Below are positions 8,101-56,881 of a DNA stretch of 64,000 bases, piece after piece (the stretch's first letter is position 1; the number at the start of each line of letters is the position of its first letter). The position numbers and the translations under genes are program-made. The stretch spans positions 19,158,001-19,222,000 of the forward strand of contig NC_135760.1 of the NCBI RefSeq assembly GCF_052425735.1, given 5' to 3'. Source of the stretch: Oculina patagonica. Taxonomy: Eukaryota. Under the pieces are notes generated by a model. The model was not told where the DNA came from and made no database searches. It saw only the letters and a program-made list of their open reading frames with translations.

Positions 8101-8186
8101 TAACAACGACACTCAATGCCATTTAGTTTAAATAGTTAGTGTACTTATTCATGGTTGTCTTTATTCACTTCAGGAACTCGTCCAAC

Positions 8187-8286
8187 ATGTTTTTCCAAAC
8201 GTGTTTTGGAACGTTATTCGTGTTTCTGGCAACAGTCAAGGCGGCACCGTCACCCATCCCCAATCCGAAAGTCGCTCCTTCTCCAG
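8187..8286 (+). CDS. NOWA-like exon 1: signal peptide and Pro-rich linker
   Basis: MFFQTCFGTLFVFLATVKA|APSPIPNPKVAPSP; acceptor CAG at 8171-8173, donor G|GTAAT at 8287. Confidence 0.75.
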
Positions 8287-14200: not shown

Positions 14201-17200
14201 AAAGAGACTAATTATATATGATGGAATCTATTAGATTTCGTAGACAGAAATTTCTAATTCATATAATATAAAGGGACGCTGTGAGCAAGAGACCGCCGGT
14301 TTGACCTTTCTCGCAGCTCAAAAGCTTGCTCGCGCGTATCGCATGTCGTTTATCCGTGATATCACACTACAGTATAACGCAATATTTGTTGAGACAACAT
14401 AGGGACATCTACAAAAAATATAAAAATATAAAATAAAATATTACTGTTGTTCAATTGAGCAAATCTACGAAGAAAATGTATTATTTGCATCCTTGGTCTG
14501 TGAATTCATAACAACTGTACTTATTTGAATTCCACCAGATCCTCAGGCTATGCAATGCTACTTATACAATCACTAACAAGCTTCTTATGTTTCAAAAATG
14601 TAAGCTGCAGTTGGATAACAGTCTTTTTCACACACAAGGTGTCAGCTAAGGTGTCAGACCCCTTGTGAAACGCCATCGCTTTTGCATGCATCGCGTGCCA
14701 TTTTTCTTTAAGAGCTAACGTTTAACACTATGCTCCAGGAGGGGCAGGATGACATGCGCCACAACGAGAATCAAAAGGCCCTCAAGCTGCCTCGTGGCAC
14801 AATGTTGCCCGAGTGAAATTGGTGAAAGCGAACAGCTGTTTAAAGAAAATTTGAGACTTTTCACCCCAAATGCAATTTCCTCCTTGGACCTCCACTCAAC
14901 TAAAACTAAAATTTATTTGTCCCATTTGGTGGTACAGATCATAGTTAGGCGGCGAATTAACGATCTTATTTAATATTCCAGTTAGTTGAAAAAGCAATTA
15001 GTTTAGCGTTTTTATTTTTTAACCTTGATATAGTTTTAATGTTTTTATCTACTAGTTTTAATGTTTTATTTACACACGACCCCACAAGCTATGTAGCTTT
15101 TTTATCCCATCGTGTATAAATAAAGGTTTTTTTTTTTTGATTGATTGAAAAGAACAATCCGTGAACTGATCGGACTTAGGCTTAATTTACACGGGACCGG
15201 ACGGGAATCATTTAGATTGGAGTAGACAACTGCTCTTTCAAAGACCGGGAGCTCTGATGAAAACATTTGATCATATTAACACATGCATGTATAAGTTGCA
15301 CACTACAAGTATTAAATTTTTATATCGAGGAAATATAGTTCTTTGGCTAAATTCCAGAGGCAGTACCAGCTTCTTCGGTCATGAAGTTACATGCCTTGTG
15401 TAAATCATCATAACAGTAAAAGCGAGTCAAAACAATGCGAAAATATTCTACTTCGTTTTGTTGCAAATGCACAGCCATAAATGCAGATATTTACAATAGC
15501 AACTGGTGAAGAAATTAAAATAATTTTATTGGCAATCTGTGACCCAACAAACAGAGACCACACAAACAGAGAATGGCAAACTTGTGCTTTGACCGATGGT
15601 ACATACGGGGGTGGGTGGGGAGGGGGCGGGGGCGGGGGGTAATAATGTTGCCACTGACAATATGTACGCATTGTCATAACCTGCAATTAGGCGTTAGTTC
15701 TCGCGGCGGTGTAGTTTAGCATTGTCATGGATCAGTGCGTAAGTGTTCGTGACTAGCGCGTAACACGAGAATTAATAAAAACAACGACCGGTATAAACTT
15801 GACATCACACCATACATGCGAGTTTTGTGCCATATACTTTGATCATGAGGATCATTTGTGCAGGATTACAAAAAACGGGTACTAAATCAATCGCCAAAGC
15901 CTTGCGGCACCTTGGGTTTACGGTATTTGACTGGGAAGAGCAAATCTTTGACTTTGTGGATGACTGGGTCGATGTTTTCCAAAATGGTACTAGGCCAGAT
16001 GTGAAACGACTCTACCAAAATGCTGATGCAGCCGTGGATATGCCTGGGTGTTTTTTCTACGAGGAAATACTGGAGGCGTTTCCTGACTGTAAAGTCATTC
16101 TGAGCGAACGAGAGGAAGAATCGTGGATAAAAAGTTTTGTGAATCAACTAGAACTGGTGGATGCCGCTCGATCCAAGATTCGGTACATGCTATCGCCAAC
16201 GTCGAACAAAGTGAGGTATATCACGGACTCCTATTGGTACGCTGCTTTTGGCTCTTGTAACCCCAAGTCCACCTATGTTTTCAGAAAGCGATATCGTATC
16301 CACAACCACCGTGTAAAGTCGATTGTTCCCGCTGACAAGTTCTTGGTGTACAACGTAAAACAAGGATGGAAGCCATTGTGTGATTTCTTGGGGTGCGAGG
16401 TCCCGACTGTTGCCTTCCCACATGAAAATATCAATGCTGAAATTTCTTCGACGATCCTCATGACCAGATATGGCCGGCAAATAAAATGGGAAATGCAGAG
16501 AGGTGTTTTTGCAATCGGTTCAGTTCTGATAATAATTGTAGCAACATTTCTGGCCATCTATTTAAATCAGTGATATTTAGACTCGATTAGACTCGCATAG
16601 TGAATAACAACAATGACGTCTTCATTAAACTTTTGTTTATTCTTTTAGTTTGTTTTTCATCAAAAAAAGTTATACCGCATCAAGAGACCAAAGTCAACTT
16701 TTTCTACATTGCCAGTTCGTAAAAAAAAGGCTCTCTAAAACTTGCAGCGTAAATTTAATCATTAAGGCTTAAAATAGTTTTTTATTTAAATCTGGCCATA
16801 AGTGACCAAAAACTTCTTCAGTGTGTTCACCAATGATTGGGGCTCATTTCATACCATTATTGTAGCAATTACTAATAAAAGGTGTCCTAACACTGCTCCA
16901 TCAAAGTATAAGGGGGGGAGTTTGAAAATGAAAACATCCGCATGTTCTGAGAGAAATAGAGGGAATCTAGGCGAAGTTTTTCGTTTTGAAAAAATTGTTT
17001 TAGGATCACCGGCTGTTAACGAAAGTGTTTTAGGAAAATCGTCCGCCATTCCGGTTTGTTTGTCTGAGTCATGACGTCACTCGTGCGCTTCGCTATTCTT
17101 TGTATTCACATGACGTCATCAAAGTTCTTAAATCCAAAATCAAACGGTCCCTAAGGACCCTAAGCTGTATTAAATTTTTCATTGGCTATAAGACTTTCTA

Positions 17201-19796
17201 AATATATATTTTTTCAAAGGTTTTTCAGCTCGATAACATCCTTCGATAACATCTCGATAACATCCTAACATCCTTCCTTCAGGCCTTTTGAATTTCGGAG
17301 TTTTACACCACAAGATACATTCAATAATAGTTACAATAGCAATTAGTTAAGAAATTTAAATTATTCAATTGGCAAGCTGTGACACAAACAATGGATGGTA
17401 AGCCTGTGGTTTGACCGTTACGCACCAGGGGAGGGCTCATGCTACCGCTGACGTGATACGTACGTGTTGTCATGGATCAGTGCGTAGGTGTTCGTGACTA
17501 GCGAGTTATATACACATGAGAATAAACAAAACGACGTGAAACTTGAAATCAGAGCATAAAAGCAAGTCTTGAGACACATACTTTCAACATGAAGATCATT
17601 TGTGCAGGATATGCAAAAACTGGTACTAAATCTATCGCAAAAGCCTTGCGGTACCTTGGGTTTACGGTACTTGACTGGGAAGAGCAAATCTTTGACTTTG
17701 TAGATGACTGGGCCGACGTTTTCCAAAACGGCATCAAGCCAGATGTGAAGCGAATTTACCAGAATGCTGATGCAGTCGTGGATATGCCTGGAACCTTTTT
17801 CTACGAAGAAATAATGGAAGCGTTCCCTGACTGTAAAGTGCTTCTGAGTGAACGAGACGAAGATTCGTGGATAAAAAGTTTTGTTAATCAACTGGAATCG
17901 ATGTCTGCTGGACGAACCAAGATGTCGTATATGCTCTCGCCGACAGCGAGGAGAGTAAGATATGTCGTGGACTCGTATGGCAACGCTCTTTTTGGCTCGT
18001 GTAACCCCAAGTCGACCTATGTTCACAGAAAACGATATCGTATCCACAACCACCGTGTAAAGTCGATTGTTCCCGCTGACAAGCTGTTGGTGTACAACGT
18101 AAAACAAGGATGGAAGCCATTGTGTGATTTCTTAGGGTGCGAGGTCCCGACTGATCCCTTCCCACATGAAAATATCAAGGCTGAAATCACCGAGACACTT
18201 TCCAAGACTAGATATGGCCAGCAAATAAAATGGGAAATACATAGCGGTTTTTTTATAATCGGTTCAGTTCTTGTAATAATTGTAGCAATATTTCTGACCA
18301 TCTGTTTATTTAACTACAGTGATATTGACTCATGAGTAAATAACTGATAACAGTGATGTTTTTATAAAACTTTACTAATCATTTTTAGTTTGTTTTTAAT
18401 CCAATTAAGATGTTATAAGGAATTACGAGACCTAATTCAATTTTTTTTATATATAGCCTTATCGTAAAAAAAGACTTTCTGAAAACTTGAAGCGTAAATT
18501 TCATCATTAAGTTTAAATTTTTAATGTGTGTAAATTAATTCACGTTGCTACTCATTGCGTGCCAACAACGCAGGCAGCATCCGCCTTCATTTCGTACAGA
18601 ATTTACGAGTATGGTTCAGCAGAGATCACGTTTACGCACATATATTGGGTATACAAGCATAAAAACTAAAAATAATGCGTCCTTACTCAAATGAGATCTT
18701 AAATAAATTCGGTCACGAAATTGTAAAGAGTCAATTATCACACAACTCTTTAATCCAAATAAAGGAAACACAAATCTTTTAGAATACCTTTGTTGTTGAC
18801 GTGAGCAGAATGAAACACCAACGCAGTCATTTAACATGGCAGGTAGAGAGGGTCTCAATGGGGTGGGGGCTTTTACGGTTAACGGTTAAAATTTTGGCCT
18901 TTTTACGGCTAACGGTTAATTTATTTCCATTACGGTTAACAGAAGTTAAAAGTTAATTTTCATTGTTTTTAATAGTTAAAAATCAATTTCCATTATTGAA
19001 AAACGTATTTTAGGTCTTTGGACCATTTTTGGGACGATGAAGTAAACTAGTTTGGGTTATTTATAATCACTGACCGATTTTTACGGTTAACACATTTTAC
19101 GGCTAACGGTTAAAATTTTCCATTTTTTACGCCTAACGGCTAAATTTTTGGCCGTTTTACGGCTAACGGTTAACCCCATTGAGACCCTCGGTAGACAAAT
19201 TGAGCCATTTCGTAACTAGCCGGACGCCCACTCTTACAAGTGAATCTTATGCTCTCAAAAAAGGCGCGAAAACTTAAATCTTTTTAAATATTAAAATATT
19301 TGTGTGGCGACCCAAAAGGTTCTAAAGCGGGTTGTCCTAGACTCGTTTTCTCTGAAACCTTATGGTTTTGGACAGTTCGTTGATCGACGCCACAGCACAA
19401 GAAACCACATAGTAACAAAAATCAGAGTCGGATTATAATATTTGCCTATGGCATTGGGTTTTTTGACGCGACCACTTAACAAGTCGTCACGCCTCCCTCC
19501 CCCTTGCCCCTTGCCATCCTGCAGTTCTTCAAGTCACAGCGACATAAAATAAGCTGGCCACTACACAGCGACTTCACAGGAATCCCATGGTACACTGCTG
19601 TCTGTATCCACGGGAACTGTCCACGACACAGGTTCACTATTAGTATGCCCTCATTGCCAAAGGCTCTCTTAATTCTTATGCCATATCCTTAACATTAGTA
19701 TTCCTTATTCGGCCTAGCCATCAGTGCACAGTTTTCATTTCTGCCTTAAGTATCGAAATACTTAATGAAATGCTCAGTGACCTGGCCTTTGAATGG

Positions 19797-19827
<31 letters not shown>

Positions 19828-22800
19828 CAGACCTCACTGCTTTTGTTGTGTTAATCATGTTGTTTTGATGCAAACTAGTTTGCATTTACATAATAAAGGA
19901 GAGAGGTTTGTATCAATGCAAGGTCACCTCCAGCCTCACTACCATTCAAAGGCCAGGTCACTTGGCAGGCAACTGTAAAATGGACTATTGACACTTTCTT
20001 TCACTGCACACCGCTTTCGACAAGGCTGTGTACGATCTCTGTGACTTTCTCTTCTGGATCTTCTGGCTGTGGATTTCATGATGTTCGCGCGATTGCTTTC
20101 GGAGTACTCGCAAGCGTTCACCCAAGTTTTTGATTGGATGAAATAAGTCGGAAACTCTTCGAGTGCTTGAACGAAGATTGGAAAAACTTGCACTTGTTCC
20201 CCCGACTGACGGTCCATGTGCAAATTTTTTACTATGAAAAGGAAAAGTCAAAAACGTGTAATTATACCGTGGTTCTGTCTGCTTTGTGTTAAACCATATT
20301 CGTATTTTCGGTATTAGACTGGAATTATCTTGCAATGGAAGCTAATGCGGGGGGATATCATTAAAAAAGCTTCATGTCATTTGCGTTTGAAAAGATCCCC
20401 TGCATTAGCCTCCATTGCAAGCTAGTTCCAGTCTAATTAATTAGTATTATGCATGGACTGTTAATTAATAGTTTATTTTGTATTAATTTTTATTATAACT
20501 TACTAGAATCACCTGATGTTTTTACCGTGTATAAAGAATTGTTAAATAAAATAAATAAAATAAATAAACAAATAAATAAACTAGTTCCAGTTCAATACCG
20601 AGAATACGAATATGGTCTTTTATAACAACCCGAGAATGCGGCTTGTTTGTCTTGTAAATTCCTATTTGCCTTTTTTCATCTTTTTTTCTTTGACAATGTT
20701 ATTGTAATTGGTTGTACATGTCTATAAAGAGGAACAATAGCATAGAGCGAAAGTAAGTGTTCGTCACATAGGCAACATTCTAGCTGAAAAAGAATTTTGC
20801 GCAGAAAAAGAATACTATTACAGTAAAAATCCGAGCCAGAACAATAAAAAAGAACGGTAAAACATATTAAAGAAACGGAATTGAAAAATAAATTTAAGAC
20901 TTAGTTGACATGACTCTTTTGAAAAGCTTGTGTTTACAAATTACAGGTATACAGATCATGTATGCCTTGTAAATGCACGTAAACTCGGGGATACATTTTC
21001 ATGGATCATTGTGTTATCACACAAGCGAGTTAAACCAAATAAAAAAAAGACGAGTAATTTGACATCACATAAGGGGAGGAGACCATTTGTGTTGGATATG
21101 GAAAAACCGATAGTAAATCCATTGCTAAAGCTTTTCTTTACACTGGGTTTACGGTATTTGATTAAAAAGAAAAAAATGTCATTACAAGAAGCTTAAGAAT
21201 TATTTATTAACATGAATAGGAATGCAAATGTACAGTACACAAAATCCCTATTCATCAATCAGTGTGTTAGACGTGGCATGTTCTTAGGGAGGTACACCGA
21301 GCGAGTAGCTTGACCCGGCAGCAGTAAAGAAACGAACAGAGGTCAAAGACAGTTTTCAAGCTTTACTCATGAAGATCATTTGTGCAGGATATTCAAAAAC
21401 AGGCACTAAATCAATCGCCAAAGCCTTGCGGCACCTTGGGCTTACGGTATTTGACTGGGAAGAGCAGAGTTTTGACTTCCTAGATCACTGGGTCGATGTT
21501 TTCCAAAATGGAACCGTACCAGATGTCAAGCAAGTTTACCAGAATGCTGATGCAGCCGTGGATCTGCCTGGGTGCTTTTTCTACGAGGAAATACTGGAAG
21601 CTTTTCCTGACTGTAAAGTGATCCTGAGCGAGCGAGAAGAAGATTCATGGGTAAAAAGTTGGGCTCGTCAACTAGCATCTATATTAGCTACACGATCCGA
21701 GTATGTGGCCATGTTGTCGCCATCGTGGAGGAAAATGTGGTACGTTTATAATTCCTATGCTGAAGCCGCTCATGGCTCTAATAACCCCAAGTCCACATGT
21801 GTTTTTAGAAAGCGATACCGTATCCACAATCACCGTGTAAAGTCGATTGTTCCCGCTGACAAGCTGTTGGTGTACAACGTAAAACAAGGATGGAAGCCAT
21901 TGTGTGATTTCTTGGGGTGCGATGTCCCGACTGTTCCCTTCCCACATGAAAATATCAACGCTGAAATCACTGAGACACTTCCCATGACCAGATGGGGTCG
22001 GCAGGTGAATTGGGAAGTACAGAGAGGTTCTCTTGCCATCGGTTCAGTTCTTGTTGTAGCTGTAATAACTGGTCTGGCTATATATTTTAGTAAGTGACAT
22101 TCGGCTCAGAGTGAAAACAAAGACTTCTTGTATTATTCCTTAAAATATTAAAGATACTTGAGGGTCAGTGGTTTCTCCTTGATGGTTTCGATTCTAATTT
22201 GAGTTACGTCGCATTTAATTCTACAGCTCATTCAACAAAAATTGTCAGTTCAGCAACAACTCGGTTCAAACTTTACTTGTTAATTTCATTATCCCTTTTT
22301 TCAAAAATTAATGCATGTCATTCGATGTTTACTGCGTTTCCCTTAACGATTTCAAAAACCTTATTTATTCAATAATTCATGAATCCAGGGACTAATTAAA
22401 TCATGGACAATACAACACGTGTATGAGTTTCATATTGGCAAAATACCCCTTATTAGTATTTTTATACAATGAAAGGATACTAATAAGGCCAAGGACAAAC
22501 GCTTTTCTAACCTTATTGATAAATGTTACCAATACCGCCCAAAACTGAAAACCAGCCTGAACACTTTTTTAGGGTTAGAATTTTTAAAGCTATTTAATAT
22601 TTATTTTACCCATAGGCAAAGCGCATATTTAATCCTATTGTGCTGTCACTGTTTTTAAATTCTGTTTTTTTTAATCTGAATTTTGACTTGATAATGGAGC
22701 AGGTAGCGTAGAACATTCTTGGACTCTGATAGCTTTTGTAGATTTTAAGAACATTCTGGCCTTAATAAAAAACCTGTTACAAAAATCTTTTTCTCATTAC

Positions 22801-25800
22801 GGTGTCCATCTAGAATTAGATAAAAAAAACAGCAGTTTGGTTATGTTTACATATTTTAATTCGTAGATCGCGCGTATACACCCGCTAATTAAAGGGTGAA
22901 AGGTAAAGCCTGCTGTCGAGCCAAGTGGCTCATCAGGCCGGAGCTTATCCCGGTTTCTGTAGCATTAAGCGGCTCGGAGTATTTCTACTCCCCCCTGGAT
23001 GGGATGCTAGTCCATCGCAGGGTTACCCCTCAGCAGTAAATTTGCCGGTAACCCGTTATAAACTTGGGTGGAGAGAGGCACTATGAGAGTAAAGATTCTT
23101 GCATGCCCAAGAACACAATGCAGCGCCCTGGCCAGGGCTCAAACTGGGGCCGTTCGATCCGGAGTCCGGTGCACTAACCATAAGGCCACCGCGCCTCCCA
23201 CCAAACGTCAGCCCTCTAACGTCCTCAAGACCCAAGGAATTACATTAAGCATTCCAGAAAAAACACCTGGATACCTATAAAGTTCCAAAAGTAAGAACCC
23301 CTTCCCCTCTTCCGGCGGAAAGTAGCGACGTATCTAAACTATTGATAATTTTTTTTTGACAATTCCCGAATGTAGCGACCTTCTGAGTTTCAGAGAGCAA
23401 CTTCAAGCGTAATTTGACATGTTATGAGAAACAATGAGAATACAGATGCAACAAGCTGAAGTTTAACAATCAGTCAATCACAGTGGGTCTTTCCTTTTAG
23501 GACAAGGTCCGTGATTCGTGAGTGTGACATCCCCCCCCCCCCCTCTCCCAACCACCCTGAAAAAAGGTACTGTCATTACACTCATTAGACTCGCATAGAT
23601 TAAGGACTAGTTGTTCATTGAAATGTAAAATTCAATCGTTTTATGGCACATTGAGCCAATGTCAGTAGATATATTTGTTTAAGGTCCAATGAGTGACATT
23701 TCGAAAATATAACCGTCAGCCGTCAAATGCCGGCCCACAATTTAACCATCCATCGTCAAAAAGCAATGTTTTAAACTGTCAACCTTCAAAGGTACCTTTC
23801 CCCCATGGAGACCCTCCTATTCGCTCAATTATAGAAACTCTGGTGCGCTGACTAATTGGCAAATGGGAACCGATTGAAATGGAGGCAAAAATAATTAACA
23901 TTTATTGGACGAGGTCGAGCAAAGTATCGTGATTTGTCAGTAGCGAGCAGATCGATTATTTGTCAAAGCTGGCACTAACAAATAAAGATATTTTGGGACA
24001 GCTTACGTTGCTTGTGTGCAGTGTCGAGCAGTGAATATTCAAAGAACATGAATTAATATACAAAGTATGATAAAATTAATGATTAATTCGCCTTCAAGTT
24101 ATGAGATTGCTAGAGCTCCCTGACCTTACAATAAAGAAATATTAAGTTAAATTAGCCCTCGTATTATTTAATGCAATGTTATTCAAATTACAATCGAAAA
24201 ACATTGAGGAAAAAACCATCTACGCTCTAAGTGTCTTAGATATTTTAAGAATAAACAAAGACGTCTTTGTTTTAACTTTGAGTAGAGTGTCACTGATTAA
24301 AGCAGATAGCAAGAACAGTTATTACAATTATAACAAGAACTGAACCAATGGCAAAAGAACCTCTCTGCACTTCCCAATTCACCTGCCGACCCCATCTGGT
24401 CATGGGAAGCGTATCAGTGATTTCAGCGTTGATATTTTCATGTGGGAAGGGAACAGCCGGGACCTCGCACTCCAAGAAATCACACAATGGCTTCCATCCT
24501 TGTTTAACGCTGTACACCAAAAGCTTGTCAGCGGGAACATTTGACTTTACAAGTTGGTGGTTGATACGGTATCGCTTTCTGAAAACATAGGTGGACTTGG
24601 GGTTATGAGAGCCAAATTCGGCATCGACGTAGGCATTGTAAAGGTACCACATTTTCCTCCAAGTTGGCGACAACATGGCCACATACTCGGATCGTGTAGC
24701 CAAAATCGATGCCAGTTGACGGGCCCAACTTTTTACCCATGAATCTTCTTCTCGTTCGCTCAGAATCACTTTACAGTCAGGAAAAGCTTCCAGTATTTCC
24801 TCGTAGAAAAAGTTCCCAGGCATATCCACGACTGCGTCAGCATTCTGGTACATTCGTTCCACGTCTGGCCTTGTACCGTTTTGGAAAACATCGACCCAGT
24901 GATCTAAGAAATCAAAGCTCTGCTCTTCCCAGTCAAATACTGTATACCCAAGGTGCTGCAAGGCTTTGGTGATTGATTTAGTACCCGTTTTCCCAAGTCC
25001 TGCACAAATGACCTTCATGGTAAAGTTCAGCTATTAATGGTGGTTGTGCCTCTCTGCCGTAATGTCAACTTACATGTCGTTGTTTTTTTTTTCGTGCAAC
25101 TTGTCACGAACACGTCACTGATGCATGAAAAGACGCATTATTATTCATTGCAGCTACTATACTCTATTCTCATCGGATGAGAGCATTCCTGAGCTATTAA
25201 ATTCACGTTGACATCAAATTTTTATGTCATATCTACGGACAATAGGATTATACATGCAGAACTGATGTCATTTCTACAGATAACCTTGGAAGCTTTCTAC
25301 CTTGAAAAAAATATTGGAAAAATATTTATATTCCACGGTTTAATATTTGGTGCCTAACATCTTAAAAGTGGCACTTCGATTTCAATTTTTGGGATACCAA
25401 TCTTAGAAGATATATCAGTTTTCAAATGTTAGCTAATGTAAGAAAGGAATAATTTTCTACATTGGAATTTTATCTTTGCTGGTACTACACATTCACCTAG
25501 TGTATTTTGTGGCATTGGCTAGTCCTATCTATGTTTGCATATACGAAAAAAATCCTAATTACTTAGAGTATTAAGTCGAGTAATGTGGAGGGGGGGGGGG
25601 GGGGAGGGGCTCGTCAATGAAACATTGAATAAAGAGAGGGGCCACCTGCTCTTTTCAGGCCTGAGGAGGGGGTCCTGACGGACTGAATTTCTATCTTTCA
25701 TTATATTTTTCCCTACCCCCTCTACATAAATAATGACCGGTTCCTAATAGAGAACAGACTAGCATCGTGCGGAATCGTGCAAACGCCGCCTTTTTCTGCC

Positions 25801-28800
25801 TTGCCGTAGTCTGTCTTGCTTGTCAGTGAGAGAACGAAGCGATGACTGAATCATCCAGATTTGCCAAAGTAACGGAAAACTGTTTGGAAAAACTACTAGA
25901 TGATAAGGACGCAAAAACATAAACATTTCATACATCATTTTTGCAAGTTTTTGCTAAAATATTTGCCAGTGAATCATTGACATCAAAGTAGTTTACAAAC
26001 GTGTCTTTGACTGTTTTTCTTGTTTCGCCATCAAAAAATCGTGTGCCTTTTTAGCACTAACAATGTCTTATAAAACAATTATTTACACTCAGCATGTTCA
26101 TATAATATCCGTAAATGTTGCATAACCTTAATTTCCCGTTAAGCCTCGGTCAATTAATCGCTCGTGCTTTCCAATCTGTTTTTACTGTGCTATCCGACGC
26201 TATGAAGTCATATTTGACAACTGTCCTGCAAAATTGTGCGGATCGCGGAGTGCGGAATTTATGCCTGATACTTAGCTGAGGCCATAGCTGGCCGAAAAAT
26301 GAAAAATACGTTTTTGGTCCAGTATAATTTTTAAATCGTTTTTCGGCAACTCCGGAAAAAAATGTCACTGCAAGACGGTAATGTGCATGAGCAGATCATT
26401 ATTTGTTGGCAGTTAATTGCAGATCATTTTGTGGGCTCTCGGCTCGTCAAAAAAAGGAAAAAAAACATATGCATCGAAAGAAACCTTACGCTCTTTGTGT
26501 GCAGTAAATATTGAAAGAACATGAATTATGATGAAATCGATTATTTATTCACACTTTAGTTTTGAGATTCATAGAAAAAGCGGAATTAGCTATCGTATTA
26601 GAGCGGTTTTCACTTGAGTGTCGAAAGTAAATTGCGTTTGCTTTGGTTTTGCATTACTACGCTTAGTGATTGGCTTAAAAATCTCGCGCCACCTTCTCAG
26701 CCAATCAGGAGTAAAACCAAAACCAATCGTGACTCGCTCGCGCACAATTTCCCGCGCTTCGTGCCAGCTACATGTATTTGCTTCGAGTTTTGATTGGTTC
26801 ACTGGATTATCTGTGTCCTTTGTGATTGGCCAGAGTAATTACTTTGGTTTTGGTTTTACGACACTCAATTGAAAACCGCTGTCACAGGATGTTTTGCAGA
26901 AAATATTGCAAAATAAATAGTTAAATTAAATCTTGATTTAGTGGCTTTTAAGGTTTAGGTAATTAGTACCGAAACTTCTAGAAAATCTAAAATATACCAA
27001 AAATAACTATAAATTAAGATAGTGTTAATTGGTTAAGAAGGCGAGCTTAATATCACGTTTTTTATAGCCACTGAACTGAGGCACGGCCAGCGCCCATTTC
27101 TGCGCACTAAAGTGTTTTCTTGTATTTATTTAAGTTCTTGTCTTGTGATTTTTATGTCTTAATACCTAAGTTTAAGAATATTCGTGATTGTGAACGTGAG
27201 TTCAGTTCACTGATAATGGAACTAATATATTTTGATCTGTCAACCATGGGACATCGTGTCTCAATCTTGTCATATACTCCGTGAGAACTACTTTTGCTAA
27301 TACCACCAAAACCCCTTCGGCAACCGAAATGACGCAAGAATGTATCTTAATGAATGTATGATCCATTAGCAACTAGGGAAAGATAATTTAAAAGATATGC
27401 ATGTTAATAAGCAGCTAAAAAACATATATAAGCAACGCTGTAAAACTAATAATTTAGAAGAAAGTTGAAGGAAGAAGGAAGATAGAACTTGTGAGACAAG
27501 AAGCTTGAGGAAGGAAGCTATAGATGGAAGTCAAGACTCGAAGAAAGTAATTTGTAAGTCAAGACGTTGGAAGAAGAAGGACAGAAGAACTGACGTTAAA
27601 GAAAAAGAACTAGATTGTGAGTTATACTTAACAAATAAACCTATAGTTCAATCTTCACGAGTCAGAGTCGCTTGCTGCACGACAATGGAGTACAAGCTCT
27701 AAGCTAATCCCCGCCGGCAGTAAAAGCACCCTTTAACACTGGTGCAGAATCGAATGTCGACAAGCAGCCTGCGACCAACGAAGCAAACCAAAGGAAGAAA
27801 CAAAGAAAAAAGCGACAAAAACTGGATAATCTAACGAAACAGACGATTTCATAGAAGAAGAAGCCTATCTGATTGCTGCAATCAGATTAGAACTTTTAGA
27901 GCTCACGGATGGAGAACTTTAAGACACAGTGAACTTTCTCAAGAGGCTGGAACATTTTTTTTCCAAGAGGCGGACGACTGTTTAGATAAGTTAGATATAT
28001 TCCATTTAAAGATTGCTATTTAGCTTTAACTGTACTTAGTTAATTAGTTATGCCATTTTTCCCTTGCCATTTTCGCTGTTTTCAACTCGTGTTGTGTATC
28101 GTAATGTTTTTGTTTTGGTGCCGTGCATGAAGCATGCAGCATCGAAAGGCGTTACCACGCGAAGTCAAAGTAAAACGTTTTGTCACGGCAACTGCCAAAA
28201 TCCTAAAAGAAAAACGGAAAAGATGAGCGATCACGAGGACGAAGTTTCTCAGAACGATATGGCGGAAACTATGAGAAAATTACAGCGATTGTTTGTTTGT
28301 CAGAATGAATTTTTTGAAGTGACATTGCATGGTATGCAGGCAGCGATTGATAAAGTTGCATCTCCAAATTTGAAATCATCAGTCAAATTAGAGCCGTTTT
28401 CTGGCTACGAAAACGAGGACGTAAACCGTTTCCTCGAAAAATATTTAAACCGCTTAAAGGCCAAAGACGTTCACTTAAGTCCCGAAGCAAAGGCCGCCGA
28501 TCTAGCGAGCCATCTGAGAGGTCCAGCCGAAACGTGGTATTTTTCCCTTGATCGGTTTATACGAAATGATTTTGACAGTCTTGTCCGTGTCCTAAGGCAA
28601 CGATTTTCTTCGGACGATTTTAAATGGCGTCTCCGGCAGTCACTAAGTTCGCGCAAACAAGGACCCAATGAATCCTTGGATTCTTATATTGAATTTATTA
28701 ATAGCACCTGCCAACGATTGGGCGTGCCGCAGCAGGACCAAATGCATTATTTCGTGCAGGGATTGCGCGACGATATTAAGCGAGAAGTGTTAATGCACAA

Positions 28801-31800
28801 GCCTACTGATTATCAAACAGCAGAGAATCTAGCCCGCCTAAAAGTGTCGGTCGATAAAACGATCGACGAACAAAACACCAAAGACCCGGAGAAGGAACTC
28901 CTTTACAAACTTTTGGACAAATTGGTTCCACAGCCTGTTGGTTCAACAGGCCCTGTGAAAGAACCAAAACGAGTCGCAGCTTATCAGCCTGCGAGTGAAT
29001 CAAAAAATGATTTATTCGCAGAGTTTAGAAAGCTGCAAAATGAACTCCGAGATGAAATCAGATCACTTAAAACAGATTTTATGCGTCCACAGCCACCCCA
29101 GGAGACACAGTTCAATCGGCAGTATTCTTCTTTTCCACGTAATGGAAAATATTTTAGAGGTTCACCCTTCAGTTCTAGAACTCCACCTCCTCCATTTAAG
29201 GATGGTTGGACTAGTAACGGGAGGCCAACTTGTTACCGCTGTGGTGAGGTAGGTCACATTGCAAGAAACTGTTATGCTGAACCTTTGGAAATAAGTGAAG
29301 AGCATCAAGTTTCTTTAAACTAAAACGTACTCCTTTATACCGAGACAATAGGGGAGTACGGAAAAGGGAACATATTCATTTAGTAACCAGAAACGTTTCA
29401 CACGATAAACTAAGTCTCGACAAACCATGTTTTGAAGTTCCAGTCGGCACGTTGATTAATTTTTCAGATTCAAATTTAAAAGCGGAGACGAATGATATGG
29501 CCGAACATGTTCATCCAGATTTAAGAGGAATTATTTTTAGTGCCCCATTGCTAACGAGCGAAGATAAAGAAGATAATACAGAAAAAGTTGTCAAAAAGGA
29601 AATTGAAAATTTCAGTGTTACAAATACTTCCAAGGTTTCTCAAGTTGTTATTGCGAGTTTATCGAGTAATGATGCCCCGTTAATAAATTTTTCAGATGTA
29701 AGTTTAGAGACGCAAGAGTCGTCGTTCCAAGAGTTTTCAGGGGATCCAAAAATTTTTAATGTTTCAGACAATTCCGAAATACCGCTTGGAAGTGAAGTTC
29801 AAGACAACGACGACAACGCTACCGAAGAGTTAGTTGACCTATCAATTGAGTTTGGGCACGATTTCTTTTCACGGTCAAACGATACTTTTGAAATTAAGAA
29901 TTTTATTCATCCCGATCTTGAAGATATAGATTTCTCCGTGATCCAAAGTGAAAATAATTTTGAAGAAGATTCTTTTTTTGCCAGTGTTGCCATAAACGAT
30001 AATATATTCATGGACATGCCATGTTTACGCACATATTATCAGTGTGAAAAAGATGTCGAGATAAATCCCAGATTATGTGATGTTGATGCAGATCATCAAA
30101 CTATTGTGGTTGATATTAAGACGATTATGCTAATAGTTTTCATCAAAGTCAGTCTTTATTTATCCACATTGAAATTACTAGTCGACAGCGTAACCGCTAC
30201 GACTATAAGTTTCTGCTTTCATTTTGACGATTGTTTTCGCACAAAGAACCCTTTTGATCTGAGTAACACGGATCTCAATTTTTTCAAATGGATGTTTGCT
30301 TCATGCACTGAACGGCGCTTTACGGAAGAATAATTCAAGGCCGTTACCGACTTTCCAAGTAAGTTGTGCTCGCTCTGTAACTGCATGATCTTAAATTTTT
30401 CCTAGTAGACTTTTGCAGAGTCGCCGCGATGTGGCAAACTTTCCGCGCGACATACAAAAAGGCAAAAACGTCTCTGATCAATGTATTTACCCGATTGAGT
30501 ACAACTTACGCTAATTTCCTTTATTTTGTTTTTGACCTATTTAAGTCTTAACTTTAATTGAGTGTCGTGTCACACTTTTAATTCGAATGGGGACATTCGA
30601 TTTAGATCGGGGGGTAATGTCACAGGATGTTTTGCAGAAAATATTGCAAAATAAATAGTTAAATTAAATCTTGATTTAGTGGCTTTTAAGGTTTAGGTAA
30701 TTAGTACCGAAACTTCTAGAAAATCTAAAATATACCAAAAATAACTATAAATTAAGATAGTGTTAATTGGTTAAGAAGGCGAGCTTAATATCACGTTTTT
30801 TATAGCCACTGAACTGAGGCACGGCCAGCGCCCATTTCTGCGCACTAAAGTGTTTTCTTGTATTTATTTAAGTTCTTGTCTTGTGATTTTTATGTCTTAA
30901 TACCTAAGTTTAAGAATATTCGTGATTGTGAACGTGAGTTCAGTTCACTGATAATGGAACTAATATATTTTGATCTGTCAACCATGGGACATCGTGTCTC
31001 AATCTTGTCATATACTCCGTGAGAACTACTTTTGCTAATACCACCAAAACCCCTTCGGCAACCGAAATGACGCAAGAATGTATCTTAATGAATGTATGAT
31101 CCATTAGCAACTAGGGAAAGATAATTTAAAAGATATGCATGTTAATAAGCAGCTAAAAAACATATATAAGCAACGCTGTAAAACTAATAATTTAGAAGAA
31201 AGTTGAAGGAAGAAGGAAGATAGAACTTGTGAGACAAGAAGCTTGAGGAAGGAAGCTATAGATGGAAGTCAAGACTCGAAGAAAGTAATTTGTAAGTCAA
31301 GACGTTGGAAGAAGAAGGACAGAAGAACTGACGTTAAAGAAAAAGAACTAGATTGTGAGTTATACTTAACAAATAAACCTATAGTTCAGTCTTCACGAGT
31401 CAGAGTCGCTTGCTGCACGACAATGGAGTACAAGCTCTAAGCTAATCCCCGCCGGCAGTAAAAGCACCCTTTAACACCGCTCTATTAAATGCCATGTAAT
31501 TCAAATTACAATCGAAAAACATTGGGAAGAAAACTATCGACGCTCAAAGTGCTTTTTAAAAGTACCGGTATTTTAAGAATTAACAAAGACGTCGTTGTTT
31601 TCACTTATGTAAAGGCAAATGTCATTGATTAAAACAGATAGCAACAAAATGTTGCTACAATTAAAACAAGAACTGAACCGATTGCAAAAACACCTCTCTG
31701 GACTTCCCAATTCATCTGCCGACCCCATCTGGTCATGGGAAGTGTTTCAGTGATTTCAGCGTTGATATTTTCATGTGGGAAGGGAACAGACGGGACATCG

Positions 31801-34800
31801 CACTCCAAGAAATCACACAACGGTTTCCATCCTTGTTTTACGTTGTACACCAACAGCTTGTCAGCGGGAACAATCGACTTTACACGGTGGTTGTGGATGC
31901 GAAATAGCTTTCTGAAAACATAAGGGGATTTGGTGTTACAAGAGCCACTGATGGCATTAACGTAGCAATCGAACATGTACTCTGTTTTTCTCGCTGTTGG
32001 CGATAACATGGACACAAACTTTGAGCGTGTAGCAAATAGCGATTCCAGTTGACGCATAGCACTTTTCACCCATAACTCTTCATCTCTTTCGCTTAGAATC
32101 ACTTTACAGTCAGGAAAAGCCTCCAGTATTTCCTCGTAGAAAAAGTTCCCCGGCAGATCCACGGCTGCATCAGCATTCTGGTAAATTCGTTTCACATCTG
32201 GTTTGGTGCCATTTTGGAAAACATCGACCCAGTGATCTAAGAAGTCAAAGATCTGTTCTTCCCAGTCAAATACCGTAAACCCAAGGTGCCGCAAGGCTTT
32301 GGCGATTGATTTAGTACCCGTTTTTCCCTGTCCTGCACAAATGACCTTCATGAGTAAAGCTAAGCTATCAGAAGTGGGTTGTGCCTCTGCCGTGATGTCA
32401 AGTTACATGTCGTTGTTTTTATTCTCGTGAACTCGCTCTAGTCACGAACACTTCACTGATGCATGAAAAGGTGTATTATTATACATTGTAGCTACTTTAT
32501 TCTATTCTTATCAGTTGAGAGCTAGAGCATTCAGCTATTAAATTCACGCTGACATCAAATTTACATCTCATATCTATGGACAATAGGATTATACATGCAG
32601 AACTGATGTCATTTCTACATGATAAGGGACCGGTCACTATTAACGTAGAGGGGGAAGGAAGGGCGAAAAGGGGGGGGGGTCAAGGCTGTTTCAGTTGGCT
32701 TGGGGGGAGGGCTAATTTTTTCATAAACCTTAAAATGAGGCCATCATTTTTTAAGGTTTTGCAAGAGGACTTGTCTGTGCTTTTGTAAATGGGATTACTT
32801 CAACTGGAAATGGGATTACTTCAACTGGACACCCAGTTAAAAGAATAGTATCATTACTTTATTGCTTTAATATTTCACAATTAAATAAAAAGAAATCCAG
32901 ATCAGCCTGTTAAGTTTTTTATTTATTTATTTATTTGTTTATTCATACAGGAACATGTAGTTTAGCTTGTTTAAACGGAGTCCTGTCTAAATACTTAAAA
33001 ATAAATAAATAACTTCGATAAAATTAATACTAAAGAAAACCATACAAATTACATTTTATTACTACAGTGGAACCCCGATATAACGATCCTCGATATAACG
33101 ATATTCCCGGTATAACGATGAATATTCTATGTCCCGGCAAAAGTTAGAGTAAAATGTATGGGACTAGCTGAACCCCGATATAACGATCTTCGATATAACG
33201 ATATTCCCGATATAACGATGAGAATTTAGCGGGCCGAACGTAAAATCCTCCCGATATAACGATATTATCAGTTCACAGTCACAATTTTTTTGCAAAACAT
33301 CGAATTTAATGCAATAATATTACAGTTACTGAGTTATCTCTAACGTTTCTGTAAACAGCTTTGTAAAATGATATACGAAAATGATACTGTGTTCTTAGCC
33401 TCTTTATCAAAATTATTCTCTTTATCCTCCTTTATATGCAGTAAAAATACTTGCTAGGTTTACCCCGATATAACGATATTTTCGGTTATTTTTCGCCCAT
33501 ATCGTTATATCGGGAGTTTCAATATAACGATTCCTCGATATAACGATATAATTTTACTGCTCCCTTGGCATATCGTTATATCGGGGTTCCACTGTAGAAC
33601 ACTACATTAAAAGGACTATGTCACGGGGATTTCGCACATATTTGGTCTAAACTGTTCTGAAATAAGTGGTAGGCAACTTTACCGATGAAAAACATTATCT
33701 TTGAACTTTTAACTGAAGATATAACCTTTATTTGGGTTTAGAAATCAACCTTCGGCTATAAATATCGATTTTTTTTTTTGAAGGCGCGCGAAAACTATTT
33801 GAAAACGTTGGCTAACGAAGATATATCACTTTTCCAATTTTTCTACAAAATATGATGAAATTATTGATTTATTCAGGCTTCAAGTTTTAAGAGATTCCTC
33901 CAACTTTCTGAACTTATACAATACAGAAAAGTTGAAATAGCTCTTTCATTATTAAATGCCATAAAATTCAAATTACAATCGAAAACCGTAAAAACCGTGG
34001 AGAAAACCAATGACGCTCAAGTATCCGGCTGAGATTTTGAGAGTCAGTAACGACTTCGTTGTTTTCACTATGAAACATCCTAGAGTGCTACGACTTTGTT
34101 AAGCGTCAAGGATGATTGGAACCTTGTGGCCCGCCCAATGTTTGTCCTTTGAATGCAACAGTTGTGTACGAACGGTTAAATATAACTTGAACCAAAGTAA
34201 GGCGTTCCTACCTAGTTTGTAAGCTTCAAGCTTGCTGAGCAGAATCACATGATCGACCATGTGCGGAAAAGCCATCTTAAAATCAGCTAGAACCGTACCA
34301 TTAACGTGGTTAAATGTCTAAATTGAATAGCAGAGTATCAACTAAATGTGCAAGGGCCGTGCTGTACTGCTTCTTAAATCAAAACTGGTTGTTTATATAG
34401 ATGAGGTCGTGAACATTTGAATATTCAAACAGTAAAGACGTCGTTATTTGTTTACTTTTTCTGAGGCGAGTGTCACGGATTAAAACAGATAGCAAGAACG
34501 GTTATTAAAATTACAACAATTACTGAAGCGATTGCGAATACACGTCTCTGGACTTCCCCATTCATCTGCTGAGCCATTCTGGTCATGGGAAGTGTTTCAG
34601 TGATTTCAGCCTTGATATTTTCATGTGGGAATGGAACAGTCGGGACATCGCACTCCAAGAAATCACACAATGGCTTCCATCCTTGTTTTACGTTGTACAC
34701 CAACAGCTTGTCAGCGGGAACAATCGACTTTACACGGTGGTTGTGGATACGATATCGCTTTCTAAAAACATAAGTGGACTTGGGGTTATGAGAGCCAAAG

Positions 34801-37800
34801 GTGGCATTAAAGTAGGAACCACCTATATAGTTCATTTTTCTCACTGTTGGCGATAACATGGCCGCAAATTTGGATCCTCTCTGTTTCAACGATTCCAGTT
34901 GACGAGCCCAGCTTTTTACCCATGAATCTTCCTCTCGTTCGCTCAGAATAACTTTACAGTCAGGAAAAGCTTCCAGTATTTCCTCGTAGAAAAAATACAC
35001 GGGCATATCCACGGCTGCATCAGCATTCTGGTAAACTCGTTTCACATCTGGCTTTGCACCATTTTGGAAAACATCGACCCAGTGATCCATAAAGTCAAAG
35101 GTTTGCTCTTCCCAGTCAAATACCGTAAACCCAAGGTGCCGCAAGGCTTTGGCGATTGATTTAGTACCGGTTTTTTGAAATCCTGCACAAATGATCTTCA
35201 TGATTAAAGCTATGAAAAGTGACTTGCTCCTCTGCTGTGATGCCAAGTTACACGTCGTTGTTTTTATTCTCATGTATTTACTGATTTAACTCGCTTTAGT
35301 CACGAACACGTCACTGATACATGAAAACGGATATGTTCATATGCAAATTCAACACATGTCCTCCATATGGCCCCGCTCACGCAATCCTTAGTGTAGGGCC
35401 GGACGGGTTGACATGATCCGGTACGGAAAAAGCCGTCCAGCTCCTCACTCGAACGGCTTTATTGCAAAATATTGTGAAAAAAGTTCGCTGTTGTTGCAAA
35501 AAATGAATAACAGCAGCCACCACGGTGAAAGAGAGTCTACTATCCGGATGAACTGTCCGATAATGAAGTTTTCGAACAAGCAAACAGTTTTGATACGAAC
35601 GTCTTTCAGATGAAGCGTCAAAAATCATCGTGGGTTGAAAACGCCGTGAAGAAAACAATGTATGAACGTTTTTTTTTTCAAGTTTCTGAGAGAAGTTGGA
35701 GGAACCAGAGAAATCACAAGCATACCTTTTGCCGACAGCTGGATTAATTACTCTGTAATTTCTACATCAGTGTTCGTAGAAGAGACAAAACAGAGTACAA
35801 ACCCGACACACTTTCCTCCTTCCCGAGAAGCATACCAAGATACTTGGACGACAGCGAAACAAAAAATTAACGTCCTTAAAGACAACGAATCCAGCATCTC
35901 GTCCAGATTACGAAAAGTGTCCAGCCCACTTTTACATGTCTTTTAGGCCTACTCTGGGACCCAAAGTCGCCGTAACTTTGGGCGATAGCTTATTTTTTAC
36001 AAAATAACCGGCGATTTTGGGCGATTTAAGGCGATTTTGGGCGACATTAGGCGACTTTGGGCGATTTTGGGTCCCAGAGTAGGCCTTGGGGCGATTTTAG
36101 TCGATTTTAGCTTATTTTGTCCAAAATTACGGGCGAGTTGGGCGATTTTGGGTCCCAGAGTAGGCACTTTTGGAACGAGTTCGTTAACAGAGAATCGACT
36201 GGCTAATTTTAATTAATATAAATTTTAATTTTAAGAAAAAAAATCTGTACACCCAATACAGCTAATACTGGACGACACGACAAGAGTTTATAGTCATTGT
36301 CTGGGAAATAAAGTCACTCATTCACGATGGGTCTTAACGCTCGCAGCTGATTAACAATTATTATTTCGTTTTTTTTTTTCAGGTAGTGGCGTTGGAAAAA
36401 GAGGGCCATGTAAGTTAAATTCTTTCTGTTTGTTTATATTGCATCTTCAGTGTTCCATAGTGCAGTATCGACCGCCTGCTCAGAACAACAAACTTTTCCG
36501 ATATAACATCCGGTGTAACAAATAGAGGATATTACATGGTTGCGCGGAGATATGAAATTTATCTTCGAGTGTTCAAATCTAAGCAAAAGAAGCTATATAA
36601 TAAACACCCTTATCTCACGAACCTCCCCCTTTGATAAATCTCCTCAAAAAGCAAACCTCCCGATATAACTAACCGTCCCCGTATAATAACTCCGGAAAAC
36701 AACTCCCCTAGTACAAAAACATCCACGTATAACAAGTCTCCCGATACAGCGGTCCTCCACAAATCTTCTGTTTGAACAAACTTCCGATATAATACGAAAG
36801 CAATTCTCCCCACATGACGACCGCCCAGTATATTACATCCCCTTTCCTCTTCACTCTGATAATGACGGTCCTCTCTCATTTGTGTTGTGATGCTATTTAT
36901 GTTCACAGCAAAGTGTCCCGATGGATACAAACTGTACAACAACGTATGCTACAAGTACTTCTCGGGTCCAGTGAACTGGGTACAAGCTTCGGAGAAATGC
37001 GCCGCAGACTTTTCAACGCTAGCGTCGGTAAACAGTCAGGCTGAAGACTTGTTTGTAAGGACTGTTCTGGTAAGTTATAAATGTAAATAGCTGTAAGACG
37101 CGCGGACAGAATTTCAAAACGTCTGTCTGACTTTATTTGTTTGGGATTAAAGCCTTGTGCATCCGATTATACCCCTTGAATTAAGACCATTATTTTTAGG
37201 TTTCCATCGATGTAAACATTTTTTTTGCTTATCCTAGTTTCCCTCTAGAGTTATAATTAGCAGATATGGCTATTTTGTATTGAACAGCTATTTTATAGAA
37301 TTCAATACTTCTAAAACAAGTAAACTCAAGTTTCTCTTGGCAGAAGCCTATTGAATACAAACACGCCCAGTAAATTAATGTACGCATTGCGGTCCTATGT
37401 TTCGACTTGCATTCACCTTGAAACGCAGTTTCCCAAAAAAGGATCTGGGGCGAGTGAGAAAATTTCCAGTTGGACTGGGGAGAGGCCCTGAAAATGTATC
37501 TCGTCTCGCGGCCGGTTGCGAGTCTCTCGCGCGCGAATTTATCGGCTCTTCCCTTCTGCGCTCGTTGTTCATCGAAATCTTGAAAGAAATAAAGACCACC
37601 AGTCCACGCACTTATTAACCATAAAGCTCTACAGTATACAATAAATCTTGTGTTGCACAACTCTTCTTAGTTCCTTGCCCCCGGGTGGGGGATAGCGCTG
37701 GGTGTTGCACAACAGCTGTAAAATAAACTCCATATTTACTTTCCGTACACAGACCTCAGGCGGCGTGTCGGATGCCTGGATTGGCGTAAGTGATTTAAAT

Positions 37801-56152: not shown

Positions 56153-56881
56153 TCATTGTTTAAAACAGATAGCCGCGACGATTATTACAATTATTACAAG
56201 AACTGAACCGATTGCTAAAACACCTCTCTGTACTTCCCAATTCACCTGCCGACCCCATCTGGTCATGGGAAGTGTCTTAGTGAGTTCAGCATTGATATTT
56301 TCATGTGGAAAGGGGACACTCGGGACATCGCATCCCAAGAAATCACACAATGGCTTCCACCCTTGTTTTACGTTGTACACCAACAGCTTGTCGGCTGGAA
56401 CAATCGACTTTACACGGTGGTTGTGGATACGATATCGCTTTCTGATAACGCATGTGGACTTGGGGTTATGGGAGCCATGGGCGGCATCAGTGAAGGAGTT
56501 ATAAACGAACATCAATTTCCTCCATGTTGGCGATAACATAGCCACATACTCGGATCGTGTAGCCAATAACGATTTCGCTTGACGAGTCCTACTTTTTAAC
56601 CACGAATCTTCCTCTCGTTCGCTCAGAATCACTTTACAGTCAGGAAAAGCTTCCAGTATTTCCTCGTAGAAAAAATACCCAGGCAGATCTACGGCTGCAT
56701 CAGCATTCTGGTAAACTCGTTTCACATCTGGTTTGGTGCCATTTTGGAAAACATCGACCCAGTGATCTAGAAAGTCATAGATCTGCTCTTCCCAGTCAAA
56801 TACCGTAAACCCAAGTTGCCGCAAGGCTTTGGCGATTGATTTAGTACCCGTTTTACCATATCCTGCACAAATGATCTTCAT
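56153..56881 (-). CDS. Sulfotransfer_4-like protein (copy 13)
   Basis: Intact 242-aa paralog. Confidence 0.85.
   Translation of the reverse strand: MKIICAGYGKTGTKSIAKALRQLGFTVFDWEEQIYDFLDHWVDVFQNGTKPDVKRVYQNADAAVDLPGYFFYEEILEAFPDCKVILSEREEDSWLKSRTRQAKSLLATRSEYVAMLSPTWRKLMFVYNSFTDAAHGSHNPKSTCVIRKRYRIHNHRVKSIVPADKLLVYNVKQGWKPLCDFLGCDVPSVPFPHENINAELTKTLPMTRWGRQVNWEVQRGVLAIGSVLVIIVIIVAAICFKQ

Follow-up and report, generated by a model that had tools for sequence, protein, structure and literature searches.

A non-autonomous long terminal repeat retrotransposon of the stony coral Oculina patagonica with a conserved gag-end -1 frameshift cassette leading into an orphan open reading frame

We analyzed a 64,000-nucleotide stretch of the genome of Oculina patagonica (assembly GCF_052425735.1, contig NC_135760.1, positions 19,158,001 to 19,222,000 of the forward strand), referred to here as the window, which contains a 4,597-bp long terminal repeat (LTR) retrotransposon on its + strand at 26880-31476. 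The element is bounded by two direct LTRs of 859 nt each, with TG...CA termini and a single mismatch between them, and the 4-bp target-site duplication CCGC directly abuts the outer ends of both. Its internal region of 2.9 kb comprises only gag and a second open reading frame (ORF), termed ORF2, which lies in the -1 frame with respect to gag; both are conserved and together fill most of the interior. The features of the element, in window coordinates, are the following:

26876-26879, + strand: left target-site duplication CCGC, the identical four bases being found at both LTR ends
26880-27738, + strand: 5' LTR, 859 nt, TG...CA, aligning to 30618-31476 with one mismatch
27740-27756, + strand: primer-binding-site-like sequence, read from the sequence, beginning with TGG one base past the LTR
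28127-29323, + strand: gag, 398 codons from the first ATG, the frame being open from 28064 (Pfam)
29314-29320, + strand: slippery heptamer TTTAAAC, X XXY YYZ in the gag frame, invariant in ten copies
29314-30333, + strand: ORF2 in the -1 frame, 339 codons plus stop codon (30331-30333), with a predicted acidic disordered region followed by a putative C-terminal anchor
29326-29360, + strand: predicted frameshift-stimulating hairpin, 13 bp here and 12 bp conserved, with a 9-nt loop at 29339-29347
29414-29419, + strand: GTCTCG, candidate long-range pseudoknot partner of the loop, complementary to the invariant loop sequence CGAGAC at 29341-29346
30100-30213, + strand: predicted hydrophobic helical segment or segments of ORF2, about residues 263-300 (Kyte-Doolittle, AlphaFold2)
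30220-30288, + strand: conserved C-terminal tail motif FR.K...DLSN.DLNF..W of ORF2, in all full-length members
30604-30617, + strand: polypurine-tract-like sequence with a G6 run, abutting the 3' LTR and conserved in relatives
30618-31476, + strand: 3' LTR, pair of the 5' LTR
31477-31480, + strand: right target-site duplication CCGC, matching the left copy

The product of gag matched the Pfam families Retrotrans_gag (PF03732; 2.2e-12), zf-CCHC (PF00098; 7.9e-07) and Ty3_capsid (PF19259; 4.7e-06), and showed 92% identity to Oculina patagonica LOC144645887. No protease (PR), reverse transcriptase (RT), RNase H or integrase (IN) domain was detected by Pfam in the internal region, and the element is therefore non-autonomous. 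This was the view taken in an initial annotation of the same DNA, and the layout bears it out, with LTRs, target duplication, primer-binding-site-like sequence and polypurine-tract (PPT)-like sequence enclosing only gag and ORF2. Given the near-identical LTRs, the target duplication and this restricted interior, the window element is a recently inserted, non-autonomous retrotransposon of the Ty3/gypsy type. No second copy was found within the 64-kb window. Assignment to the non-coding non-autonomous classes, large retrotransposon derivatives and terminal-repeat retrotransposons in miniature, was ruled out by the two conserved ORFs filling most of the interior. An Rfam scan of the whole element, frameshift elements included, gave no match.

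Related loci, designated by L numbers, share several of the non-coding signals. A primer-binding-site-like sequence similar to that of the window element occupies the equivalent position in L011 and is also found close to the beginning of L002. Upstream of the G6 tract, window positions 30579-30617 are conserved among both non-autonomous and autonomous elements (L002, L009, L011, L012 and L014), and in the window, L011, L012 and the L002 lineage this stretch harbors an inverted repeat, CGAATG and CATTCG separated by 4 bases; it may act in cis in the priming of the plus strand or in packaging. Another candidate signal, an 11-nt stretch of complementarity linking the primer-binding-site and pre-PPT regions, was dropped, as it is conserved neither in L011 nor in L012.

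The 3' end of gag reads ...TCT TTA AAC TAA, in such a way that T TTA AAC covers the last two sense codons and the stop codon TAA (29321-29323) directly follows the heptamer. After a 5-nt spacer, positions 29326-29338 pair with 29348-29360 to form a 13-bp stem with two G-U pairs, and the -1 frame, open from 15 nt upstream of the heptamer, continues for 339 codons counted from 29314. Heptamer, hairpin and an open -1 frame (estimated there at about 337 codons, to 30333) had all been pointed out in the initial annotation. The calculated fold energy of the hairpin is -17.2 kcal/mol on its own, with a z-score of -3.4 against dinucleotide shuffles in a 96-nt context, and ranges from -14.7 to -17.2 kcal/mol across six lineage variants. 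TTTAAAC is in itself not unusual, with 26 copies in the window and 30.6 expected; the weight of the cassette lies in the position of the heptamer on the last two sense codons of gag, in the hairpin and, above all, in its conservation in ten diverged copies.

These ten copies are the window element, L011, L002, L007, L001, L010, L009, L012, L015 and L016, and the set draws on at least five further assemblies or sequencing runs and represents four or more diverged lineages. All of them keep TTTAAAC, TAA, the 5-nt spacer and the 12-bp stem, while the 30 nt upstream are wholly different between lineages. Every one of the 12 conserved stem pairs is paired in every copy; three pairs change by wobble and one has changed on both sides, from U-A to C-G, which is compensatory. 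With so little variation in the stem, covariation statistics are weak, and the evidence is one of conservation and not of covariation. Synonymous divergence (dS) in the first 16 ORF2 codons is 0.09-0.28, compared to 0.5-2.4 further on in ORF2, and the codons for invariant residues are themselves invariant in eight of eight cases in the cassette, but in just 12 of 36 cases elsewhere in the disordered region. Nowhere else in the element is conservation as high as in the cassette. Beyond the hairpin, RNAalifold returned no conserved nested structure, and a metagenome scan for the cassette pattern gave 0 matches.

A further invariant sequence may cooperate with the hairpin. The hexamer GTCTCG, about 50 nt downstream of the hairpin and 94-100 nt from the heptamer, is present in all ten copies and is complementary to the invariant loop sequence CGAGAC, with a calculated duplex energy of -10.4 kcal/mol; when single sequences are shuffled, a match of this kind turns up in around 5% of cases. 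The two codons under the hexamer, one for Ser and one for Leu, are the same in all copies, whereas in 15 of the 17 other columns with an invariant residue the Ser or Leu codon does change. As both partners are invariant, their pairing is beyond the reach of a covariation test, and we regard loop and hexamer as a candidate long-range pseudoknot. A second nucleotide island after the hairpin, at window positions 29431-29445 and homologous sites (GTTCCAGTCGGC), encodes VPVG; its third codon positions are invariant in the four lineages compared, save for one Pro/Ala change. No pairing partner was found for this island.

Taken at the level of sequence, the slippery heptamer, the downstream structure and the conserved -1 arrangement are those of a -1 programmed ribosomal frameshift site. 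The way in which ORF2 is joined to gag points in the same direction. In every copy with both genes readable, ORF2 is shifted by -1 with respect to gag, its frame opening 12-27 nt upstream of the heptamer, and tblastn homology to ORF2 starts at residue 1, that is, at the heptamer. The first in-frame ATG of ORF2 is only reached at codon 62-90 (codon 78 in L002 and codon 90 in L009), past a block, SL....F.VPVGTLI.FS, that is conserved in all lineages, and the Met near the first HPDL motif is not conserved. Since homology begins at the heptamer and a conserved block precedes any ATG, an independent start of ORF2 appears unlikely, although non-AUG initiation or splicing is conceivable. Together with the near-invariance of the cassette in ten copies, this comparison strongly supports the proposal, put forward in the initial annotation, of a retained frameshift signal that would be used to produce a Gag-X fusion.

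The predicted ORF2 protein is acidic, with an isoelectric point (pI) of 4.6 and 61 Asp plus Glu versus 32 Lys plus Arg residues. Its N-terminal part (pI 4.2-4.5) carries conserved short motifs, namely a duplicated pair, LI[ND]FS ... HPDL..I.F, as well as SFQEF.G, LGS and LVDL; in the window copy, LINFSD occurs twice and there are two HPDL..I.FS motifs. These short motifs may resemble docking motifs of the clathrin-box, SUMO-interaction and adaptor-ear classes. At the other end, Kyte-Doolittle 19-residue maxima of 2.0-2.8 fall on the C-terminal segment in all six full-length members, some of which show two adjacent stretches, and the region of the tail motif forms a nucleotide island with 77-80% identity between the most diverged lineages. 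An AlphaFold2 model built from an 18-sequence alignment gave a predicted local distance difference test (pLDDT) score below 50 for residues 1-255, in keeping with disorder, followed by a confident helix at residues 259-311 (pLDDT 75-92) and a second helix at 320-338. The acidity, the internal repeats with LINFSD and the hydrophobic segment described in the initial annotation were thus all recovered, and the structure prediction that it proposed adds the predicted disorder and the C-terminal helix.

No homology was detected between ORF2 and proteins outside its family. Pfam yielded no match at E ≤ 1, in agreement with the earlier remark that PR, RT, RNase H and IN motifs are lacking, and a profile search of the PDB produced only noise at E = 0.3-1. 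A word-seeded profile search returned 20 matches and no homology outside the family. An exhaustive profile search of 1.84 billion representatives returned 15 matches, all of 296 aa or less and all fragments or copies of the same family; the profile excluded the first ~45 residues, so a pol sharing just that N-terminal stretch would be missed. As judged by these searches, ORF2 is shown to be a predicted orphan protein specific to this family. An env-type ORF was considered and ruled out by the lack of an own start at the conserved N-terminus, the acidic, predicted-disordered N-terminal part and the presence of a predicted C-terminal anchor only.

Homologues of ORF2 were found at 89, 79, 77, 49, 44 and 35% identity, with further diverged members contributed by the exhaustive search and by loci found through gag, and wherever the locus could be read, a related gag immediately precedes the homologue. 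L009, L011 and L012 are complete elements with LTRs at both ends and this same layout. The sibling L011, on Oculina patagonica chromosome CM126637.1, is 92% identical to the window element in gag and 89% in ORF2. At least two copies are located on the same chromosome at unrelated sites, one within a sulfotransferase array and the other in an intron of a TPR gene, and at least four copies are present in one other assembly.

Six copies have an open ORF2 of 339-451 codons, and the amino-acid identity between their lineages is 35-50%, at a dS of about 0.7-1.6. The selection analysis suggested in the initial annotation gave ratios of nonsynonymous to synonymous divergence (dN/dS) of 0.36-0.60, with the bootstrap 95% confidence interval below 1 in seven of the eight pairs, diverged pairs included. 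This substitution pattern shows ORF2 to be under purifying selection. With regard to a free disruption of ORF2 in sibling copies, a possibility that the initial annotation had allowed for, the decay seen in degenerate copies is not confined to ORF2. In particular, L007 has at least one frame change in each of gag and ORF2, L015 has at least one in gag, L016 has a shortened ORF2 with at least one frame change and an adjoining DNA transposon, and in L010 ORF2 ends early, after the first few dozen codons. The transposon ORF at 11046-12575 of L016, immediately 3' of the ORF2 remnant, is of the Harbinger type (THAP, HTH_Tnp_4 and DDE_Tnp_4). In the same pairs, synonymous divergence is lower in ORF2 than in gag (0.076 versus 0.29 for window-L011; 0.68 versus 2.1 for window-L002), which suggests mosaic histories through recombination or an additional RNA-level constraint in ORF2.

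With regard to an autonomous partner sharing LTR sequences, for which the initial annotation had asked, an autonomous chromovirus-type relative, L014, was found. It shares the PPT and the 5' end of the LTR with the window family, is devoid of the cassette and has no ORF2 ahead of its protease. L014 is an LTR element with an LTR spacing of 10.5 kb, on a contig at 4x coverage, and its gag, split over two frames by one frame change, is 54-57% identical to that of the window family. Its pol ORF of 2,158 codons encodes PR, RT, RNase H, IN and a chromodomain, and the CCHC knuckle, an acidic linker of ~100 residues and PR are read in one frame. This pol is unusually long; at about 12344-14542 of L014, some 730 residues that follow the chromodomain have neither a Pfam match nor similarity to ORF2. 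Profile-profile comparison of ORF2 with the linker between gag and PR and with this 730-aa C-terminal extension gave probabilities below 1%, the top alignments being short acidic-hydrophobic lookalikes, and no similarity to the remaining pol of L014 was seen. Given the purifying selection on ORF2 and its lack of similarity to the pol of L014 or to any Pfam or PDB family, we reject the idea that it is an N-terminal remnant of pol.

Further observations tie L014 to the ORF2-bearing elements. About 50 nt, comprising a pre-PPT segment of ~25 nt, the G6 tract and the first 10 bases of the LTR, are common to L014, the window element, L002, L009 and L012. Furthermore, L010, which belongs to the same assembly as L014, is a recombinant (6901-9711) of an L014-like element and an L001-like gag-ORF2 element: part of its LTR, its leader and most of its gag are 85-97% identical to L014, whereas the 3' end of gag, the cassette and the first ~76 ORF2 codons are of the L001 lineage and then run straight into an LTR segment. 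Template switching between RNAs packaged together would be expected to yield such a recombinant. A gag tree places L014 within the ORF2-bearing elements, beside L010. These data provide indirect evidence that elements of the L014 type may be the partners of the ORF2 family. The chromodomain present in L014 is absent from the window element, which has no IN, and the chromovirus link consists of gag similarity and shared cis signals only. A different kind of relative is represented by L008, a deleted element in which gag, with at least one interruption, is joined to mid-RT and the IN region is split, and which carries nothing like ORF2.

Since a conserved cassette leads into a conserved ORF2, a minority Gag-X fusion is the most likely product, and we consider it probable that the window element is a pol-less element whose conserved -1 cassette serves to make a minority Gag-ORF2 protein. 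Most ribosomes would terminate at the gag stop codon, and a minority would pause at the hairpin, possibly strengthened by a duplex between its invariant loop and the GTCTCG some 50 nt further on, slip by -1 on U UUA AAC and continue into ORF2. The Gag part would then carry the fusion into assembling particles, as is normally the case for Gag-Pol, while ORF2 would contribute an extended arm, acidic and disordered, in which docking-type motifs recur, and its C-terminal hydrophobic helix would tether part of the Gag pool to a membrane. A chromovirus-type partner of the L014 kind would supply reverse transcriptase and integrase in trans. A possible role of ORF2 as a membrane tether fits the predicted C-terminal hydrophobic helix. 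Going one step further, ORF2 might act as a "parasite-of-a-parasite" accessory factor at Gag-Pol-like stoichiometry, in which a membrane anchor and a docking array in or on particles would capture partner enzymes or route particles to a membrane compartment or vesicles; we offer this extension tentatively and regard it as rather unlikely in this specific form.

Several observations weigh against this interpretation. The stem is almost invariant and its covariation is thin, control shuffles reaching the observed score in 75 of 500 cases, and there is no covariation whatever between the loop and the downstream hexamer. Constraint is weaker on ORF2 than on gag, for which dN/dS is 0.06-0.26. The membrane-anchor role is drawn from hydropathy and from a single-helix AlphaFold2 prediction with a predicted template modelling score of 0.25. 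The closest autonomous relative found, L014, has no TTTAAAC-hairpin cassette that might account for the origin of the signal. Finally, the NCBI gene model of a sibling copy, P0001, starts at an internal Met, and independent initiation is conceivable.

This last point bears on the alternative in which ORF2 is a genuine protein but its translation is independent of gag, beginning at the internal ATG (codon 62) or using a spliced subgenomic RNA, with the cassette being a relic or having some other function in the RNA. Several members do have a Met just before the first HPDL motif, where P0001 begins; however, that Met is not shared by L002 and L009, where the first ATG is the later codon given above, conserved coding sequence lies upstream of every ATG with homology reaching the heptamer, and the cassette is precisely the stretch in which conservation is highest and synonymous change is suppressed, so that we deem separate translation improbable. 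Still less probable is that ORF2 is a fragment of a host gene captured by transduction, of no benefit to the element and open by chance. ORF2 has no retroelement homology, and there are precedents for capture: maize Bs1, a non-autonomous LTR element with transduced host fragments, acquired foreign sequence. Capture of foreign ORFs by LTR retrotransposons is also known in bdelloid rotifers (PMC5408684). However, the 15 matches among 1.84 billion representatives, none exceeding 296 aa, belong to this family only, all homologues with read loci adjoin gag, and the ORF has stayed open with dN/dS below 1 across lineages separated by dS above 1.

A decayed spacer left by deletion of the pol domains, which the initial annotation had raised as the alternative to a functional fusion, would account for a mostly predicted-disordered protein lacking enzymatic motifs. 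It is hard to reconcile with conserved motifs, an open frame and dN/dS below 1 among lineages at 35-50% identity, with the lack of similarity to the gag-PR linker or other pol parts of L014, to Pfam families or to PDB entries, or with the quite different appearance of a true deletion derivative, L008, and we therefore reject this reading, to which we give very little credence. We give even less to the idea that the locus is a domesticated, no longer mobile host gene of the PEG10 type. Although gag belongs to the PF03732 family and a -1 frameshift signal is kept without RT or IN, the near-identical LTRs, the target duplication and the multiple copies (at least two at unrelated sites of the same chromosome and at least four in one other assembly) are those of a mobile element.

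The retrotransposon lies in the spacer between two units of a tandem array of Sulfotransfer_4 genes, which consists of intronless ORFs of roughly 208-266 aa, mostly of ~242 aa. All six array ORFs checked gave Pfam Sulfotransfer_4 matches, with E values from 1e-39 to 1e-57, and copies of the array unit around the insertion are at 24165-25278, 31483-32619 and 34501-35274. The ORFs of the array are:

10685-11416, 12749-13375, 15827-16573, 17589-18335 and 21369-22097, + strand: ORFs of the tandem array
24290-25018, 31629-32351, 34473-35273, 46365-47093 and 56153-56881, - strand: ORFs of the tandem array

Two other ORFs of the window, both on the + strand, were recorded. The first, at 40907-42319, has 470 codons, gave no Pfam match and coincides with the one part of the window that is rich in GC (GC 0.49, with a strong negative GC skew). 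The second, at 58657-59466, encodes 269 aa and matches the RNase_T / DEDD 3'-5' exonuclease domain (E 2e-16); members of this exonuclease superfamily have been described as accessory ORFs of rotifer retroelements (PMC5408684).

Gag-retaining non-autonomous LTR elements, gag-pol frameshifting, PEG10 and the capture of accessory ORFs (PMC5408684) are each already known separately. In the literature searched, no account came to light of a family without pol in which the recoding signal is kept to express a conserved non-pol protein, or of any gag-X frameshift element. The common view of non-autonomous LTR elements is that of stripped-down passengers, while the family described here has kept what appears to be the gag-pol recoding machinery with a new conserved protein behind it. 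If the proposed fusion is made, the frameshift module would be reusable for cargo other than pol, and the family would offer a natural example of a Gag-cargo fusion, relevant to the gain of accessory or membrane-interacting genes and to the conflict between parasite and helper elements. Should ORF2 act as an accessory factor, it could represent an intermediate in the acquisition of membrane-interacting accessory genes by retroelements. Compact as they are, the invariant loop and the complementary hexamer ~50 nt downstream are, in turn, candidates for stimulating frameshifting at long range in an animal retroelement.

Among known systems, gag-retaining non-autonomous LTR elements that rely on an autonomous partner are exemplified by maize Zeon-1 with Cinful and mouse ETn with MusD. 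Like these, the window family is LTR-bounded, has no pol, shares cis signals (PPT and LTR ends) with an autonomous lineage and recombines with it; unlike them, it has a conserved orphan ORF under purifying selection in the place of pol, probably entered by way of a conserved -1 cassette. The cassette itself resembles the -1 frameshift sites of retroviral and Ty3/gypsy gag-pol: a heptamer occupies the final codons of gag, a stable stem-loop follows after a 5-nt spacer, and a -1 ORF overlaps. Here, however, the downstream ORF is not pol, and in the nearest autonomous relative found, knuckle, linker and PR share a single frame and the cassette is missing. PEG10 is a single domesticated Ty3/gypsy gag-protease host gene without LTRs, in which the -1 frameshift is retained and the second frame encodes a protease. 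The window element has in common with it a PF03732-type capsid with a CCHC knuckle and a -1 frameshift signal kept in the absence of RT and IN, and differs in being multi-copy and LTR-bounded and in having as its second frame an orphan protein predicted to be disordered and membrane-anchored. Lastly, LTR elements of bdelloid rotifers carry accessory ORF3s, including small transmembrane ORFs proposed to act at membranes (PMC5408684). The window element likewise carries a non-canonical ORF, and a transmembrane segment is a property of some ORF3s (PMC5408684). However, whereas ORF3s follow an intact pol as the third ORF of an autonomous element, ORF2 has neither a signal peptide nor an ectodomain-like fold, takes the place of pol and would be fused to Gag by the proposed recoding.

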